Of a DNA stretch of 64,000 nt, positions 1 to 62,357 are shown piece by piece. The stretch's first letter is position 1. Each line of letters begins with the position of its first letter. The notes under the pieces are model-generated. The model had not been told where the DNA came from. It saw only the letters and a list, made by a program, of their open reading frames with translations, and ran no database searches. The stretch is from Andalucia godoyi And28 (taxonomy: Eukaryota > Protista > Jakobida). The translations under genes and the position numbers were made by a program. Location: the NCBI GenBank assembly GCA_009859145.1, contig VRVR01000002.1:161274-225273 (forward strand). Direction: 5' to 3'.

Positions 1-67
<67 letters not shown>
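1..67. repeat. (GTA)n followed by (GA)n microsatellite
   Basis: Directly visible: GTA x11, then a GA run to position 67. Confidence 0.95.
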
Positions 68-70
<3 letters not shown>

Positions 71-375
71 ATGGAAAACGGAATCCAGTTTGTCTGCGGA
101 TGATGATCATCGTTGTCGCCGGCGTTGCAGTCGATTATCCGATTTTTTTGAGTCCCTTTCCTCTACTCTATATTAATTATTTTTTTTGACCTCGCTCATG
201 AAATCGGGAGGGGAGAATATCGGTTCTGTTTTGGTTTTTACGACCGATCAGTCTTTTTTTTTTTACGGTACATATTTTTTTTTAAAGTCTGCTTGGACCG
301 GAGTTGTGATTCGCTCTTTTGCGCTGCTCCGACGATCTATCTCGCGGAAACGGCGCATGCTTTTGTGCATCAACG

Positions 376-475
376 CCTACATTATACACTGAACATGCAT
401 ATCCACGAATAGACATGCATATTCAATCTTGCATCCCGTTGCCGGGAAGGGGATAGGCCCCAACACGCCTCACGT
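376..475 (-). ncRNA. Putative omega-RNA scaffold of copy A
   Basis: Same TCCCG-GCAA-CGGGA GNRA hairpin and 15-bp hairpin as copy B; runs to the element right end. Confidence 0.5.
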
Positions 476-719
476 TGTTCCTGAGAACGGTGCATTTTGA
501 TTCTGACGGCCCTAGCAGCAGGCGTAGTGACACGTGGTCTCTTAGGAGGTCTGCGGGACCTAGGAGGCCCTGTATCGAGCGGCGTAGGCGTAGGCATAGG
601 CGAATGCGTCATCCCAGCGCACTCACACCCATGTTTGAATTAAAAACGTGAAACCAAAAAACGACCGTGTCTGTTTATGGATACTTCCGTATGCATGACA
701 ATGTCGTGTCATTATTCAA
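376..719 (-). mobile_element. Non-autonomous Fanzor2/TnpB-type ghost element, short copy (A)
   Basis: The reverse complement aligns end to end with 61406-61956 (about 95% identity in the aligned core by manual count: 11 substitutions in about 230 nt), with two extra internal deletions. It encodes MTHSPMPTPTPLDTGPPRSRRPPKRPRVTTPAARAVRIKMHRSQEQR (NLS-like segment + TnpB/Fanzor N-terminal RxYPxxEQ-like motif). Left junction CCG|TTGAATAAT, right junction ATGTAGG|CG. Confidence 0.72.
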
Positions 720-1440
720 CGGTGAACACCAAGCAATACGGTTCACTTTTTTTTCTTTCTATTATTTTCTTTCTGCTTGTTTGTTATAATTGGTCCCTCA
801 AACAACACCTTTCATCAGAGGCAAAGACAAAACACGTCTGATGGCTCCAAAGAGGGATCTTCCCGCCAAACTCAAACCGGTCATGCCCAAAGACGCTGAG
901 AACCAAGAAACCATTGATCCCCTGTCGGTGGAGGCGGAGAGCAAGAAGAAGCGATGACCCTTTTTTGATGCAGAGCAATCTGCATTAGGGAGTTGGTGCT
1001 CGCCGCAATTGAAAACACGGGGCTTGAGATCCTGTCTTCGGGGACAGCTTAGCCCGATGATCGATAATGATTCATGCTCTGGCGAGCAACAAGCCGTTGG
1101 CGACTGTTGAACTGTTTCTTAACGTGTTTTATTTCGTTTTCACCGTCTTTGACAAGATGCTTGAAACCCAAACGTAGGATCCGATTAGAACTAAATAACA
1201 GTGCTGGGGCCTGTCCCTTAGATGATTGATCCGAAGGATCGATTGTCAGACAACAACATTGCAATTTGTACCCGTATTAGAGCCAATCCGTTCATTGATG
1301 CAGTCTATCGCTGGCATCGAAAATGAAAAACAGTAATAAAAAGAGTACTGGTCAGTAGAGTAGATTGGGAACCAAAAAAAAATAAAAAATGCAAGAGAGG
1401 CACTTGATTTCAAAGGCATTTACAAAACAAAAGAGGTACT

Positions 1441-3787: not shown

Positions 3788-4612
3788 ATGTATTTAATCA
3801 GAATTGTTTTGTATTCTTATTTTCCTGGGCGTATTGCATTGTGTGCGTCGTTTCCCATTTGCGTCGTAGATTATCTTTCTCGAAATGTCATTGATCTTGC
3901 GCAAGTCCAGTTTGGAACTCGGATCACAGATGCGCGTACCGCCAGCTGTCCAGACCATCCGCCGGAAAACATGCTGCGAGCGAATCGTGCACTGACATGG
4001 AAATCCATTCAGACTCCGGAGTACCCGATCGAAATCACCTTGGAACTGCCGCTGCAGTCCAGTGTACGCAGAATTGTGATCGAGTTTGGTACAGAAGATG
4101 TTCCCGAAGACCTTGAGATTTGGGTCTCTGATCATATTCCCCTTCCAACCAAGAATGTATCCAGAGATCCAGGCGGTGCTGGTAGTGCCGATAAGGGCAG
4201 CAGCAGAAGTGGCAGTCGTGACAGCAGCCCTGACGCGAAGAGCGGGGCAAGCAAGGAAAAGCCAAGCCCTGCGTCCACGAAATCGAGTGTGCAGCCACCG
4301 CAAAAGCAAGAGTTGGAGAATAATGATAATGCAGGTTTCTACAAGATCGCGACGCTGCAGCCGTCCAGCATATCTCCTGGAAAGCCACTCATTTTGGAAC
4401 TTTCGGAGCCGCTATTTGTTTCCAGATTTCGACTGCGTATCTTGTCAGGGAATGTGAAATCAGGGCGCGCTGCTGTCCAGCGATTTTCGGCTTTTGGTAC
4501 TCCTGCACTGACTGTCGACAATGTGAAGTCTGTTGCCGACATTCGCACGGTGCTGGCATTAGTGGACGCTGTCAAGCAATCGCTGACGTACCCGATCCGA
4601 TCCAGGATCTGA
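3788..4612 (+). CDS. Galactose-binding-like/discoidin domain protein, IFT25 (HSPB11)-like; true start probably in upstream short exon(s)
   Basis: VIDLAQVQFGTRI...SCPDHPPENML...WKS and RFRLRILSG...AAVQRFSAFG resemble IFT25 (HPPENI...W; LRFII...ASVHSVSAEG). A likely acceptor CGTAG lies at about 3866-3870. Confidence 0.45.
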   Translation: MYLIRIVLYSYFPGRIALCASFPICVVDYLSRNVIDLAQVQFGTRITDARTASCPDHPPENMLRANRALTWKSIQTPEYPIEITLELPLQSSVRRIVIEFGTEDVPEDLEIWVSDHIPLPTKNVSRDPGGAGSADKGSSRSGSRDSSPDAKSGASKEKPSPASTKSSVQPPQKQELENNDNAGFYKIATLQPSSISPGKPLILELSEPLFVSRFRLRILSGNVKSGRAAVQRFSAFGTPALTVDNVKSVADIRTVLALVDAVKQSLTYPIRSRI

Positions 4613-4823
4613 CCTTTTTTGGCCCCAGCGACCCGTTCTCCGTTCCTGTTCATTCAAAATCCCTGCTTTTCTTGGCCGTACAAGCAGCGTGTCTTAAAAA
4701 AATCCAGACATCCTCCATTCTCCTTCTTGATTTTGTTTTTCATTGCTTTTATTCTTGGCCCGCGACTGAGTGAAGCGGGAACGGCGTAATATCTTCTCAC
4801 TTTGCTCTTGGCTCGTCACCTTT

Positions 4824-40937: not shown

Positions 40938-42687
40938 TCAATTCTCTTCGTCGTGGAAAACTCCGGACTGCGAGGCGGATCTTGAAGCGACAGGGGAAAC
41001 TTTTGGTGTTGGCCATGTATCGATGCCGGCTTTTCTGGCTTGGACTTTAGAACGAAGTCCTCCAGGAACTGCATTCTCAACAACGCGAACGTTGGCTTTC
41101 AAATTCTTTTGCGCATCGTCCTTGTACGCAATGGTCGCAAAAACGGAAACGTGAATAATGTGCGTAGCGGTGACAACCTTTAGATCTTCCGCAATGTCCC
41201 CCACGCCACCTGCGGAAATTTCCACGTCGACTTGCCGTGACATGCCAGGTGCCAAAGGCCCAGGAGAGTAAATAACATCAATATCTCTGCTTCTTGGTTT
41301 GGCGACTCGAAATCGGCCTACCTCATTGCCAACATTGGAGAGTTGGAACGACATCCGATAGACTCGGCCTTCGGGAACAGTGCCAAACCGCAACTCTGGA
41401 GGCCGCGCAATGATGTTCGACAAACCTTTGCCGGCGAGGGTGGTAGATGCCGTTGTCACAGATCGCTGCGTGTTGTCTTGCTTCGCATTCAATTCAGACG
41501 CCGCGACATTGCGTTTCAAGGAGTTCACTGCAGGCAGCGGAACCGGCCTGCCTGAAACCAGAGAGCTCCGGAGTGTTTTCCTTTGAAGAGGATTTGTGGA
41601 AACGAATCCACCGGTCTGCGAATGACGAGGTTCCTTGACTTGGAACTCTCCGGTGCTCCCTGCGTCGCCGTGAAAGACAACGTCTTCTTCGTCGTCGTCT
41701 CGTGCTCCGCCTTCAGGAACAGCGTTCTTGGATGAGCTCCCTTCATATCGATGACGACGAAAGTCTCCAACCATTCCATCTGACACACTTGCCAGGACCT
41801 GGGTCGACTCACTGAAAGCGCCTTCATCCACGAGATCCTCTTCCGGAATTGCGCGACCCGTCTTTGGATCGATCATCATCTGGTTAATATCCGCCAACGC
41901 ATCTTGTCCAGCTGGTACTTTCCAATAATTGTCGGATTGGGGGATCTCGTCACGCAGCGTATTTCTCGGAGGTCTCGCAGGCCTTGTTGAAACAGCAGAA
42001 GACGCGGCATCCGCCACGACAGGCTCGGCAGTTGAAGTCGACCCAGGATCCAAGAGGTCACCAGCAGCAATGCGGTCGTCCATGTCGTTTAAATGGCTAA
42101 TACCGGCAACACCCTTGGAAGCCTTCCGATGCAAAGCGTCGAGTAAACGACGTTGAAATCCTGCGTCGTCGGCCGTCCCGTTGTCTGACGAGGGAACAAT
42201 GCTCTTGTTAAACTCGGCCCGTCTCGCCGTCCATTGAGTCCACTTATCAAAGACAGGGAGCACCGAGAACAGCGATCTTTCGATGCGAAGAAACTGGCGG
42301 GTGTACAGCGTCCCCCGAGCCCTGGAAGGCTCCAGCGGGCCTGGAATAACAGGGATAACAGCACGAGGGATCTGCAAATCTGCTTTGGAATTGGAGGAGC
42401 CACGACTGGGTCCTCGATACTTCAGGATCGTAATGGCTGTGGAAGAAGGGTCATCTGCTACAGGCTCTTGCACCAGAGAAATCTCAAATTCATCATTTGA
42501 AATGGAATTTGAAGCACCTGATGTTTCCGATTCTTGTGCACGATCCCAGACAACGCGTTCCACGTCACTGAGAACATGACCCACGGATCTGGGCGACCAT
42601 AGCTGGAAACCAGATCCGTCACGGTTAAAAACAAAAACACAAGAATCGTGAGTCTGCTCCGCAACAGACGGAATGAAGGCTACCTTC

Positions 42688-42721
<34 letters not shown>

Positions 42722-46538: not shown

Positions 46539-47254
46539 TGCGTTCCTTTTCAAAATATTTCAACTGAGTAGACGCGGCTGCTGGGTACCAGAGATGGGAA
46601 TTTTTTTTAAATTAAAAAACGGGGGTGGGAGAGTGAGTGATGCTGCTGTTTCTCACAAAGACGACAACAAACAGCATGTATGAACGCACGAAAAAAACAA
46701 CAGGGCAAACGAAATGAGAATCCGTGGTGCTCGCTTGACAACTCCAAGTTCGAGGCTGATTTGGTGGAATGTCCCAAACTGTTCAGCGCTAATTTCTGGG
46801 GACCCTGTTTAATTTGTTTTTTTCTTTTTCCACGCGATGCCAATATACGTGACCCCTTGCCACGCTACGCAAGACGTATGATATTTTCGCAGCAAACCCT
46901 TTGATGCTGGGTCACCGCAGGGGCGCGTCCACTTCCACAGCCTCGCACCATGCGGGACGAGAACCAAGTCCCACTCGACCAAAGGCGCATGAATCAGGAT
47001 TCATCAGCAGATCCGCAACCTGACGACGGACACGCATCGCAAGCTTGCAATGTAGTTAATTATAATTAATCATTAAAAAAAGAAGCATCGTCATGAATCA
47101 AAGTCCACAGGAACTGGGAGTGAATTGATTTTCTGGATGCTCATCTTTGAACTGTGTGGTGTTCATTTTACAAGGAACTGAGAACTGGGAACTGGGAAAT
47201 CAAAAATAAAAGAGTGAACAACCGTCCGACAACTGAAACGAAGAGTCTCAGTTC

Positions 47255-59695: not shown

Positions 59696-61234
59696 TTATT
59701 TCCAGTAATCAACTATCGGTAGTCTAGAAAATGGATCCAACTTCTGGTGCATCGCAGAGACTGACCGTTGTGCAACGCCAAGAGAACTCGAGACAGAGGT
59801 AGCGTTTGGTGCAGACAGCATCAGAAGGCGAAAAGCAATCAGCTTTGCTTGTTCCACGATGACCCTTCGATTCGCGAACTCCAACATGTCCGTGCCCAAT
59901 GGTGACGGTGATGATCGTATTTCTCTCAATGCGTCTTCTAGAGATAAGCCGAGCTTGTTATGCAGGCAGTGAACAAGAAAGTCTTCAAAACATGCGGAAA
60001 ACCGATGGACCACTGAACTGAACTGAGAGCTGCCGAGGGCAACCATGCAGTATTTTTCCCACGTCCCGCCCCCGAGCGCAGGAAATCGCGACTTTCGAAT
60101 GTAAAACTGCTTCCAGAACTGATGTTCCAAGACGGGAAAGCGGCAGCGAATCTTGTCGCACAGCAGCACAGTGACGTACGCGTCCTCAGCAACCGGGCTG
60201 TGTACATTGCGAGGAATCGCAGTCAACTGCAAGAACGACTGGTGTTCCTTGCCAAACCACGTACTGCGATCCTGGGGCAACTCAAATGTCTCCACATCGT
60301 CCAACGGAGCCCACCCTTCTTCGAAGATGTGAATACTTTCAACTCGCCCACTAAAATCGTGCTCATAATCGTCCAGGCTACCGACGGGAATGGAGCAGCA
60401 CGCCCGACTGACCGCCACAAACTCCTCTGCAATCAAACTGGAAATCACAAGGCACGTTGATTCCTCCAACAGCAGCTGATGCACATGCGGTAGCACACTA
60501 CTCTTGGTAAACAACACGCGAATCTGCATTTTCGTGACCCACAGAAGCAGGATTGTCAGATCCTCTGGAATCGATTCGACAGACGCACACAGCATTGTGG
60601 TGTTGGAGCCGTCTCCAACCGCCAGGCACTGCGATTTCCAGTCTCTGACCTTGCGCACGACCTGCCGAGGGATGGGAAGCAGGATTCCAGCAAAGACGCT
60701 TGAGCGATCGCGACCGGCACCCAGAAGCCGGCGTATTTTGATCTTTGATGCATCGTTCGGAAGCATCGGAAAAGAAATCTGGGACACAAGAAGAAGGTCT
60801 TCTCCCTCCCCAAGTTCATCATTGCCACTCAAACTGAAAGCATCCGGAATGAGATTCTCACGGTCAAGCAACAGCGAATCTGCAATCTGGGAGCATATCT
60901 GCACGACCTGCTGCAACGTAGACTGGCAATCCGCCATTGTATATCCCTCTCTCGTCATTTGGATTGCTTCGACGGCAAATCGAAGACCAAGATACGCAGT
61001 CGAGGCGCATCCCAAGTACTGACATTTCCGAATTGCACGCAGAGAAGCAAGCAAGACGTGCACAACCGAACTCGTGTCCTCACCCAATTCCTCGAGAATC
61101 CGCACGATATCGCTGCTGGCTTCGTCACCACAGAACACCAAGGACGTACTGCACAATCGCCGAGCTGCGAGTCCAAGAAGCCTCCGAAGCGTCAGTTCAT
61201 GACCAACTCGACTCGCATCCACTGCATCTTGCAT
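59696..61234 (-). CDS. Divergent group II chaperonin-like protein, BBS12-like
   Basis: 512 aa with CCT-like layout; VTVLL...LEHQFW...LGGGTWEKYC resembles BBS12 VTVLL...EDRFW...LGGGAVEFLC; no GDGTT ATP motif. Confidence 0.5.
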   Translation of the reverse strand: MQDAVDASRVGHELTLRRLLGLAARRLCSTSLVFCGDEASSDIVRILEELGEDTSSVVHVLLASLRAIRKCQYLGCASTAYLGLRFAVEAIQMTREGYTMADCQSTLQQVVQICSQIADSLLLDRENLIPDAFSLSGNDELGEGEDLLLVSQISFPMLPNDASKIKIRRLLGAGRDRSSVFAGILLPIPRQVVRKVRDWKSQCLAVGDGSNTTMLCASVESIPEDLTILLLWVTKMQIRVLFTKSSVLPHVHQLLLEESTCLVISSLIAEEFVAVSRACCSIPVGSLDDYEHDFSGRVESIHIFEEGWAPLDDVETFELPQDRSTWFGKEHQSFLQLTAIPRNVHSPVAEDAYVTVLLCDKIRCRFPVLEHQFWKQFYIRKSRFPALGGGTWEKYCMVALGSSQFSSVVHRFSACFEDFLVHCLHNKLGLSLEDALREIRSSPSPLGTDMLEFANRRVIVEQAKLIAFRLLMLSAPNATSVSSSLGVAQRSVSAMHQKLDPFSRLPIVDYWK

Positions 61235-61649
61235 CCAATCTCCACACCCACCAAGTCACAAAAGCCAATACACCACGATTCCACGGTGCATTGGATGCAC
61301 TTCAGACGTTTGCATGCATCTATTGTCGTCTTTTCCTATCACCACAGCGCTCTCCCTTTGTTTTTTTTTAATGCAACCCGCTCTCCCACAGTAAGCATCA
61401 AGCTGTTGAATAATGACACGACATTATACATACGGGAGGAAGTGTACATAAAACAGACGCGGTCAATACTGGCCGACACCAGCTCGTTTGTTTCACAGGG
61501 GAATTCGTGCTTACGCACGCTCGGCCAAAATTCAGCCGGTGACACAGGCTCCGCATTTTCGACACTCTTTAACGCAGCATCCGTAGCCATCTATTCTATC
61601 ATTCGTTGGTTTCACTTTTAAATTCAAATATGGGCGTGAGTGCGCTGCG

Positions 61650-61909
61650 ATGACGCATTCGCCTACGCCTGCGCCGCTCGATACAGGGCCTCCTAGGTCC
61701 CGCAGACCTCCTAAGAGATCACGTGTCACTGCGCCTGCTGCTAGGGCCGCCAGACTCAAAATGCACCCTTCTCAGGAACAACGTGTCACGCTGAGAAAGT
61801 GGCTCACCGATTGATCGAGATTGGGAACGGAGCGCGGAACATTTATCTGAAGAACGCCGTGAGGCGTGTTGGGGCCGATCGCCTTCCCGGCAACGGGATG
61901 CAAGACTGA
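61650..61909 (+). pseudogene. Internally deleted Fanzor/TnpB nuclease relic
   Basis: 61650-61808: MTHSPTPAPLDTGPPRSRRPPKRSRVTAPAARAARLKMHPSQEQRVTLRKWLT. 61810-61909: IDRDW, one extra G at about 61825, then NGARNIYLKNAVRRVGADRLPGNGMQD*. DRDxNxAxNI is the TnpB/Fanzor RuvC-III motif. Confidence 0.8.
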
Positions 61910-61956
61910 ATATGCATGTCTATTCGTTGATATGCATGTTCAGTGGATAATGTAGG
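61855..61956 (+). ncRNA. Putative omega-RNA scaffold of copy B (5' end uncertain; overlaps the end of the relic ORF)
   Basis: GNRA hairpin TCCCG-GCAA-CGGGA (61885-61898) and 15-bp hairpin CTGAATATGCATGTC-TATTCGTT-GATATGCATGTTCAG (61906-61943), ending at the element right end, where omega-RNA scaffolds sit. Confidence 0.55.
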
Positions 61957-62357
61957 CGCAGGCTTTCATACTGAATTCATCACAAATGTGAAATGATTCT
62001 TCGCAGACTGCAAAAGGAAGATTGAAGAAATCCCCACGTGACCGAAGCGTTGCGCTGAACACTTGTCTTTTGTGTGCCGAACTGTGCACGACGGCAATGG
62101 CTGTGTCGGGAGGAGGATGCCTCTGATGATGGTTATGATGAAGGTGGAGGTGCACGCAGTACAAACAACAGCGGAATGTCGACAGCGAGTGATATTGGCG
62201 GTTCGACGAATTTGCCTGGTTCTTCGGAATCGGCAACTCGGGAAAAGCCATATTTTGTTTCCGGCTGCTGCTGCGGCGGCGTTTTGTTTGTCTGTTCGGC
62301 TTTGTGCTAGCGAGTGTGGCCGAACCCGACCAGAATGGTTTACGATTAACAAAGGGA

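Follow-up and report, generated by a model that had tools for sequence, protein, structure and literature searches.

The omega-RNA of the Naegleria Fanzor2 protein NlovFz2 was defined by RNP sequencing; the TAM of this system is CCG and its guide is 21 nt long (Saito et al. 2023, PMC10432273). In the published architecture, the omega-RNA consists of three stem-loops and a pseudoknot to the guide-adjacent bases, and it overlaps the 3' end of the nuclease gene (Yoon et al. 2023; Saito et al. 2023). The pairing of a loop with guide-adjacent bases was demonstrated for ISXfa1, which encodes an IS607 TnpB, and proposed for Fanzor2; a single mismatch in the equivalent pseudoknot of ISXfa1 reduced activity more than 10,000-fold (Yoon et al. 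2023, 10.1101/2023.08.09.552727). Omega-RNA scaffolds have been published, and so have ghost omega-RNA loci devoid of an Fz gene, which were described in S. punctatus and other species and whose scaffolds work with SpuFz1 in human cells (Saito et al. 2023, PMC10432273). No report of Fanzor2 or IS607-type elements in jakobids was found in the literature searched.

The window, a stretch of 64,000 nucleotides, belongs to the jakobid Andalucia godoyi, in whose draft nuclear genome it lies on contig VRVR01000002.1; this assembly omits subtelomeric scaffolds that resemble transposon or virus sequence (PMC7050145). Its segment 61852-61958 is very probably the right end of a dead, internally deleted IS607-type Fanzor2 transposon, homologous to the omega-RNA (reRNA) scaffold bound by NlovFz2. 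Three copies of the element were recognised, two of them with a scaffold that is matched over its whole length by the two covariance models described below (R1 and R2) and with a flank that may correspond to a guide.

61405..61958, + strand: copy B, an internally deleted, non-autonomous Fanzor2 (IS607-type) element and the most complete copy.
374..720, - strand: copy A, the element of copy B with two further deletions, as seen by copy comparison.
4398-4745 of locus L001, about 5 kb past the window end, minus strand in that locus: copy C, in the same orientation as copy B.
61852..61958, + strand: omega-RNA scaffold homologue of copy B, matched by R1 and R2 over the whole model.
374..477, - strand: omega-RNA scaffold homologue of copy A, matched by R1 and R2 over the whole model.
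61959..61979, + strand: CAGGCTTTCATACTGAATTCA, putative guide equivalent in the flank of copy B, modelled on the 21-nt NlovFz2 guide.
353..373, - strand: TTGATGCACAAAAGCATGCGC, putative guide-equivalent flank of copy A.

Copy B comprises, in this order, a left end, a 5' region, an N-terminal ORF remnant, a C-terminal ORF remnant and the right end. Comparison of copies A and B places the start of their homology at GTTGAATAATG and its end at ...ATAATGTAGGCG, the flanks being unrelated, and one further deletion of copy A lies at a microhomology junction (GGAACAACGTG / AGAACGCCGTG). In copy C, the junction between N- and C-terminal remnants and the frameshift are those of copy B while the flanks are different, which implies that an already dead, non-autonomous derivative was copied to new sites. 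A deletion of its own takes out the start-codon region of copy C, and the copy is truncated right after GTGAGGTCTGTTG; it is devoid of SL3, SL2, SL1 and the tail, and it escapes detection by R2. The copies have the make-up of ghost loci, with omega-RNA region and element ends present and the nuclease gene absent. No intact Fanzor2 gene was found in the 82 kb of A. godoyi sequence examined, and a gene for the serine recombinase TnpA is absent from the element copies and from the same 82 kb.

A divergent 512-aa ORF (59696-61234, - strand) has its start codon 171 bp from the left end of copy B (interval at window 61234-61405). Copy B is situated in the upstream region of this ORF, where a shared bidirectional promoter could drive transcription into the element. 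About 370 bp separate copy A from a run of N that marks an assembly gap (window 1-70; L002 13127-13775). Microsatellites, (GTA)n/(TAC)n and (CT)n/(GA)n, edge this gap, and the sequence past it is unrelated.

The left-end junctions read CACCG/TTG in copy A, TACCG/CTG in copy C and AGCTG/TTG in copy B. CCG, the TAM of NlovFz2, consequently abuts the left end in two of the three copies (A and C, not B). Among these three copies only, the junction dinucleotide is CG at both ends of copy A and at the left of copy C, and TG at the left of copy B. Neither inverted repeats nor a target-site duplication were seen in copies A, B and C. On the right, the resemblance between A and B stops at GGCG, the flanks being dissimilar from the very next base, as expected of a variable guide, and divergence directly past GGCG or GGTG is seen between loci L166 and L167 as well as between the two Andalucia copies.

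Remnants of Fanzor2 coding sequence in the window include the following pieces.

61650..61814, + strand: N-terminal remnant, an ORF of 54 aa plus stop with a basic, NLS-like patch followed by RLKMHPSQEQRVTLRKWLT.
61810..61909, + strand: C-terminal remnant, IDRDW-NGARNIYLKNAVRRVGADRLPGNGMQD and a stop, with the RuvC-III motif and the C-terminal tail.
46830-47061, + strand: a fourth, heavily decayed Fanzor2 fragment with core coding sequence, detected by tblastn and HMM.

In the copies, about 54 N-terminal and about 32 C-terminal residues are joined out of frame with no core between them, and an intact Fanzor2 ORF, with its WED, RuvC-I/II/III and zinc-finger regions, is absent. The C-terminal remnant becomes readable (IDRDWNGARNIYLK...) when the GGG at 61823-61825 is read as one G too long, and the other frame of copy B as it stands gives GNGARNIYLKNAVRRVGADRLPGNGMQD and a stop. 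Protein and omega-RNA sequences of NlovFz2 were taken from the supplements of Saito et al. 2023. In BLASTP, the N-terminal remnant matched NlovFz2 residues 97-137 (30.4 bits, E=1e-6) and the frame-corrected C-terminal remnant matched RuvC-III residues 474-486 (E=6e-4). In hhalign comparisons with a profile of 25 family members, the N-terminal piece reached a probability of 86% (E=5e-6) and the C-terminal piece one of 95.3% (E=2e-8). Both pieces match NlovFz2 and the profile at collinear positions, and tblastn with family proteins also matched 61650..61814. At E<=1e-10 the broad family numbers 3,359 proteins and carries the Pfam domains OrfB_IS605 and zinc ribbon; P0069 has the closest C-terminal tail. 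A search for homologous proteins with the remnants yielded no match and no near-identical full-length protein, an exhaustive search of representative proteins for the exact 54-aa N-terminal ORF gave 0 matches, no NCBIfam profile matched the remnants, PDB sequences gave chance matches only, and the PHROGs database gave a weak transposase hint only (phrog_506, E=0.1-0.3).

The fragment at 46830-47061 is composed of two pieces in different frames. The first reads ..NIRDPLP..PLPQPRTMRDENQVP (family consensus IKSSEPLP..IPxPLExxSENQAP) and the second ..IRIHQQIRNLTTDTHRKLAM followed by a stop (family consensus RRIQxKIRNLVDExHKKL). Stop codons interrupt it, and about 55 aa are missing at the expected position of the RuvC-I region. 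Eight of ten tblastn queries hit this one place (E=0.002-0.35), and the HMM domain E is 0.0017. No homology to the left or right end was found nearby. The fragment suggests that full-length Fanzor2 genes were once present in the lineage.

The right end itself can be divided into the following parts.

61854..61867, + strand: SL0, ACGCC-GUGA-GGCGU, aligned to the Naegleria SL0 GCAC-CUUGU-GUGC.
61871..61882, + strand: SL3, GGG-GCCGAU-CGC, degenerate in copy B.
61885..61898, + strand: SL2, UCCCG-GCAA-CGGGA with a GNRA tetraloop, aligned to the Naegleria outer helix.
61899-61905, + strand: conserved UGCAAGA, directly after SL2.
61905..61944, + strand: SL1, a 16-bp hairpin with two G-U pairs and an 8-nt loop.
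61945..61958, + strand: tail GGAUAAUGUAGGCG; the element ends at 61958.
61952-61956, + strand: GUAGG, pseudoknot partner of the SL3 loop.
461-450, - strand: SL3 of copy A, GGG-GCCUAU-CCC.
447-434, - strand: SL2 of copy A.
427-388, - strand: SL1 of copy A, whose SL0 is shortened to 4 bp.
380-376, - strand: GUAGG of copy A, forming with the loop bases CCUAU an intact pseudoknot of five pairs.

The initial annotation of this DNA had described a 5-bp UCCCG/CGGGA stem with a GCAA tetraloop, the same in both copies, which is present at 61885-61898, and a longer stem of 15 bp with 13 Watson-Crick and two G-U pairs. The loop of 8 nt and the G-U pairs of this longer hairpin were correctly described; its arms (61905-61920 and 61929-61944, loop UAUUCGUU) form a stem of 16 bp with 14 Watson-Crick pairs. 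The stop codon of the C-terminal remnant, a TGA at 61907-61909, lies inside the 5' arm. In copy A (window 388-427, minus strand), a T to G change converts the 8-nt loop into U-A-[UUCG]-U-G, and the minimum-free-energy fold of SL1 is there an 18-bp stem, 2 bp longer and capped by a UUCG tetraloop. The position of SL2 is occupied in relatives, as judged by eye, by UCCAUC-UUCG-GAUGGA (L043), GGAUC/GAUCC (L003) and CCGCA/UGCGG (L109). The tail is kept in relatives as AAUGUAGGCG, AAUAAAGGCG and ACUAGGUG, and the flanks diverge right past it. The 102-nt stretch 61855-61956 folds better than shuffled sequences on the plus strand (z=-3.9) and on the minus strand (z=-3.6), where the G-U pairs of SL1 turn into mismatches.

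The identification of these hairpins as an omega-RNA scaffold, proposed in the initial annotation, was borne out by two covariance models that contained no Andalucia sequence. Model R1 was built from only two natural variants of the NlovFz2 omega-RNA scaffold with their minimum-free-energy structure, and model R2 from ten relatives recovered by R1, Andalucia being left out. A scan of both strands of the window with R1, filters off, returned as its best two matches 477-374 on the minus strand (25.0 bits, E=3e-4) and 61852-61958 on the plus strand (23.1 bits, E=9e-4), the remaining window matches having E of at least about 0.07; with R2, copy A scored 44.2 bits (E=1.3e-7) and copy B 33.4 bits (E=2.4e-5), the next match reaching 9.9 bits (E=2.2), all these E-values being rough owing to a shortened calibration. 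The R2 scores of both copies are separated from the background by more than 20 bits. The R1 matches cover the whole model and end at 374 and 61958, the boundaries set independently by the copy comparison. The ten relatives recovered by R1 lie at or overlap the 3' ends of Fanzor2 genes and score 23-143 bits, a range that includes the Andalucia scores; these also fall inside the narrower span of 23-66 bits observed for relatives placed at the 3' ends of real Fanzor2 genes. The homology of 61852-61958 and 477-374 with the Fanzor2 omega-RNA scaffold is thus strongly supported. A third R1 match (42617-42689, E=0.067) is taken to be noise and was not reproduced by R2.

Only five of 160 broad-family loci have this scaffold type, and the Naegleria-type scaffold marks a sub-lineage of the broad family. 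This restriction explains why comparison of the right end with the 160 loci by exact motif and BLASTN was nearly empty. No Rfam family reached its gathering score and a permissive Rfam search with both right ends gave chance matches only; exact 20-mers of the right end had 0 matches in viral and metagenome contigs. When divergent scaffolds were aligned with MAFFT, their stems fell out of register, and these alignments were for that reason left out of the modelling. A hand-written structural descriptor matched copy A only, and it carries little weight alone since about one match occurs in each shuffled window.

Covariation among relatives supports the structure. In the 12-row model alignment, standard pairs fill 94.8% of the pair cells against 67% in shuffled alignments (0 of 500 shuffles reach this value), both sides vary in 30 of 36 pairs, and the covariation score reaches 0.654, compared with 0.20 for shuffles and 0.08-0.11 for slid partners, with the reservation that helices other than the pseudoknot were counted on a structure-fitted alignment, which inflates pairing. 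All four pairs of SL0 and all three of the outer helix (SL2) covary, and 15 of the 16 pairs of SL1 change on both sides. The pseudoknot between the SL3 loop (columns 40-44) and the tail (columns 194-198) pairs in 98.3% of cells, and three of its five pairs are compensatory (CG/UA; AU/UA; CG/UA/GC/UG); these counts are unbiased because the pseudoknot is outside the model. An independent test on 14 loci, in which each loop was confronted with its own tail and with the tails of the other loci, also favoured the pseudoknot (51 of 5000 permutations). This pairing agrees with the one of Yoon et al., and the SL3-to-tail pseudoknot, earlier proposed for Fanzor2 from folding alone, is now backed by covariation.

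The argument of the initial annotation that G-U pairs favour an RNA structure extends to the family, in which the structure-fitted alignment has 41 G-U-type cells and three A-C-type cells. This excess indicates a fold of one strand; a hairpin of the top DNA strand would give the same asymmetry.

The two scaffolds of the window differ in state. In the initial annotation, two differences between copies had been counted and the scaffold had been thought to tolerate them. For the long hairpin both statements are exact: within SL1 the copies differ by C/T at 61906 (C-G versus U-G) and by T/G at 61928 in the loop. The whole shared right end, however, has five substitutions (61877, 61881, 61906, 61928, 61946), and tolerance does not extend to the SL3 stem and pseudoknot of copy B, which are broken. 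G61881 creates a G-G mismatch in the SL3 stem and G61877 a G-A mismatch that disrupts the pseudoknot; these are the sole SL3 break and the sole pseudoknot break among 12 aligned sequences, the other 11 of which pair. In copy A, where the pseudoknot is present, SL0, SL3, the pseudoknot and the outer helix are unbroken and one pair, at the base of SL1, is broken. Copy A has the family-consensus base at 61877, 61881 and 61946, and its GTT GGG GCC TAT CCC CTT CCC encodes VGAYPLP, the tail motif of many family proteins, against VGADRLP in copy B. The changes of copy B are hence derived and damaging. With two derived substitutions breaking the SL3 stem and the pseudoknot, copy B is most likely a decaying relic; copy A keeps all conserved pairs, and it alone could therefore still provide a working scaffold, provided that the genome encodes a Fanzor2 protein.

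The conserved C-terminal peptide VG[AST]YPL(P/G) is the translation of the SL3 hairpin GUUGGGnCCUAyCCCCU. The corresponding stretches of the window are 61868-61890 and 464-442 (minus strand), and the peptide occurs in P0005, P0008, P0017, P0050, P0052 and P0069. It is probably conserved on account of the RNA and not of the protein.

Compared with NlovFz2, the Andalucia scaffold has the same order of parts, namely SL0, SL3 (GUUGGG-loop-CCCCU), SL2, UGCAAGA and a long, imperfect SL1 with G-U pairs, followed by an A/U-rich tail down to AGGCG at the element boundary, a loop-to-tail pseudoknot (intact in copy A) and flanking DNA in the position of the guide; the Andalucia remnants match the N- and C-terminal ends of the NlovFz2 protein. 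The Andalucia scaffold is shorter (about 104-107 nt versus 120-143 nt), its SL2 consists of one 5-bp hairpin with a GNRA loop where Naegleria has a nested stem, its overlap with the ORF is much longer, with the stop codon inside SL1, and its pseudoknot is CCUAU/GUAGG instead of CCUUU/AAAGG. In addition, the Andalucia gene is deleted.

The reRNA of ISXfa1 (Yoon et al. 2023) likewise has stem-loops and a pseudoknot, formed by the apex of a 5' stem-loop with guide-adjacent bases; the direct repeats of the recombinase lie within a stem-loop, the RNA crosses the right-end boundary, and a fixed G/CG is found at the junction. ISXfa1 differs in being bacterial, in its scaffold of about 144 nt, in its TAM GGG and in its intact TnpA and TnpB, and the comparison made with the Andalucia scaffold detected no sequence similarity. 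Like published ghost Fanzor loci, the Andalucia copies are short, present several times per genome, and keep transposon ends and omega-RNA while the nuclease gene is absent. The ghosts of S. punctatus, in contrast, are Fanzor1 elements with 30-nt inverted repeats and demonstrated function, whereas the Andalucia copies are visible deletion derivatives that retain N- and C-terminal codons, lack inverted repeats and include at least one damaged scaffold. With MITE-like deletion derivatives they share the internal deletion, the preserved ends and one junction common to unrelated sites; unlike these, they show no terminal inverted repeats or target-site duplication, and their ends resemble those of IS607-type serine-recombinase elements.

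By analogy with these systems, the scaffold stretch of an intact element would be co-transcribed with, and overlap, the 3' end of the Fanzor2 gene. The processed transcript would fold into SL0, SL3, SL2 and SL1, and the SL3 loop would pair as a pseudoknot with the five bases just before the element boundary. The scaffold would then bind Fanzor2, and some 15-21 nt of flank past GGCG would act as the guide that sends the nuclease to a matching empty site beside a TAM. For the Andalucia scaffold, we infer such transcription, processing, protein binding and targeting from its described homologues.

A possible but less favoured explanation is that the right-end hairpin serves mainly at the DNA level, as a binding or recombination site of an IS607-type serine recombinase, the fold being a by-product of repeated and partly palindromic motifs. 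The arms of SL1 are exact 10-nt direct repeats of ATATGCATGT (61910-61919 and 61930-61939, spacing 20 nt) with a palindromic ATGCAT core, and these repeats and their core alone yield both G-U pairs, so that part of the conservation may serve recombinase binding to DNA. Moreover, CATGCATAC also occurs in the left end of copies A and C, both termini of the element contain TGAATAATG / TGGATAATG in the same, direct orientation, several relatives have 6-7-nt direct repeats common to both SL1 arms, and the TnpA direct repeats of ISXfa1 sit in the stem-loop of its guide RNA (Yoon et al. 2023). A Resolvase/MerR-type gene directly upstream of a Fanzor2 gene in locus L172 points in the same direction. 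A role in DNA does not, however, explain the covarying pseudoknot, SL0 and SL2, the 41:3 ratio of G-U over A-C, or the match to an omega-RNA that RNP sequencing had delimited. Since IS607 right ends are known to combine both roles, the DNA role supplements the reading as an omega-RNA scaffold and does not replace it; in SL1, recombinase binding probably coexists with the RNA role.

It is unlikely that the gene-less copies are live ghost guides, still transcribed and guiding a Fanzor2 encoded elsewhere in the genome. Ghost omega-RNA loci do exist, and their scaffolds are functional with SpuFz1 in human cells (Saito et al. 2023). Copy A retains every conserved pair including the pseudoknot, and copies A and B keep the left end and the 5' region, the putative site of their own promoter. 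As the assembly omits subtelomeric scaffolds of transposon- or virus-like sequence (PMC7050145), an intact Fanzor2 could be hidden there. On the other hand, the SL3 stem and the pseudoknot of copy B are broken, and a mismatch equivalent to the latter cost ISXfa1 more than 10,000-fold; no intact Fanzor2 was encountered in the 82 kb or in the protein searches with the remnants, and the neighbouring Fanzor pieces, copy C and the fragment at about 46.8-47.1 kb, are decayed as well. We accordingly regard it as improbable that copy A is a live ghost guide for an active A. godoyi Fanzor2, perhaps one encoded in the omitted subtelomeric scaffolds. If it were, a jakobid would possess an RNA-guided nuclease system whose guide repertoire is kept in deletion derivatives. 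Chance hairpins in a generic repeat, MITE end or terminator unrelated to Fanzor, to which the folding of both strands, the roughly one descriptor match per shuffled window and the lack of a matching Rfam family might point, have a negligible probability, given that two models from other organisms pick the exact sites more than 20 bits above background and that the adjoining ORF remnants are those of a Fanzor2.

The reading as the right end of a dead Fanzor2 transposon places Fanzor2 / IS607-type elements in a jakobid and makes the Naegleria-type omega-RNA scaffold common to Andalucia and to metagenomic and giant-virus relatives. The understanding of how Fanzor works is unchanged by the Andalucia copies. 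Model R2 can serve as an annotation aid, flagging solo or ghost omega-RNA scaffolds where the gene is gone.

Two relatives provide minor observations. In locus L172, a Naegleria-type relative, positions 1-735 hold a gene with a Resolvase Pfam domain and a faint MerR domain, located directly upstream of a Fanzor2-like gene, which it overlaps; as judged from its predicted domains, this gene pair has the IS607 TnpA-TnpB arrangement. In the N. lovaniensis locus L163, the 12-mer TATTGGAACATT directly past the right end, in the guide region, occurs twice (2330-2341 and 58-69). The second site lies about 2.27 kb upstream, near the expected left end, and the 12-mer may represent a duplicated target or a repeated insertion site.
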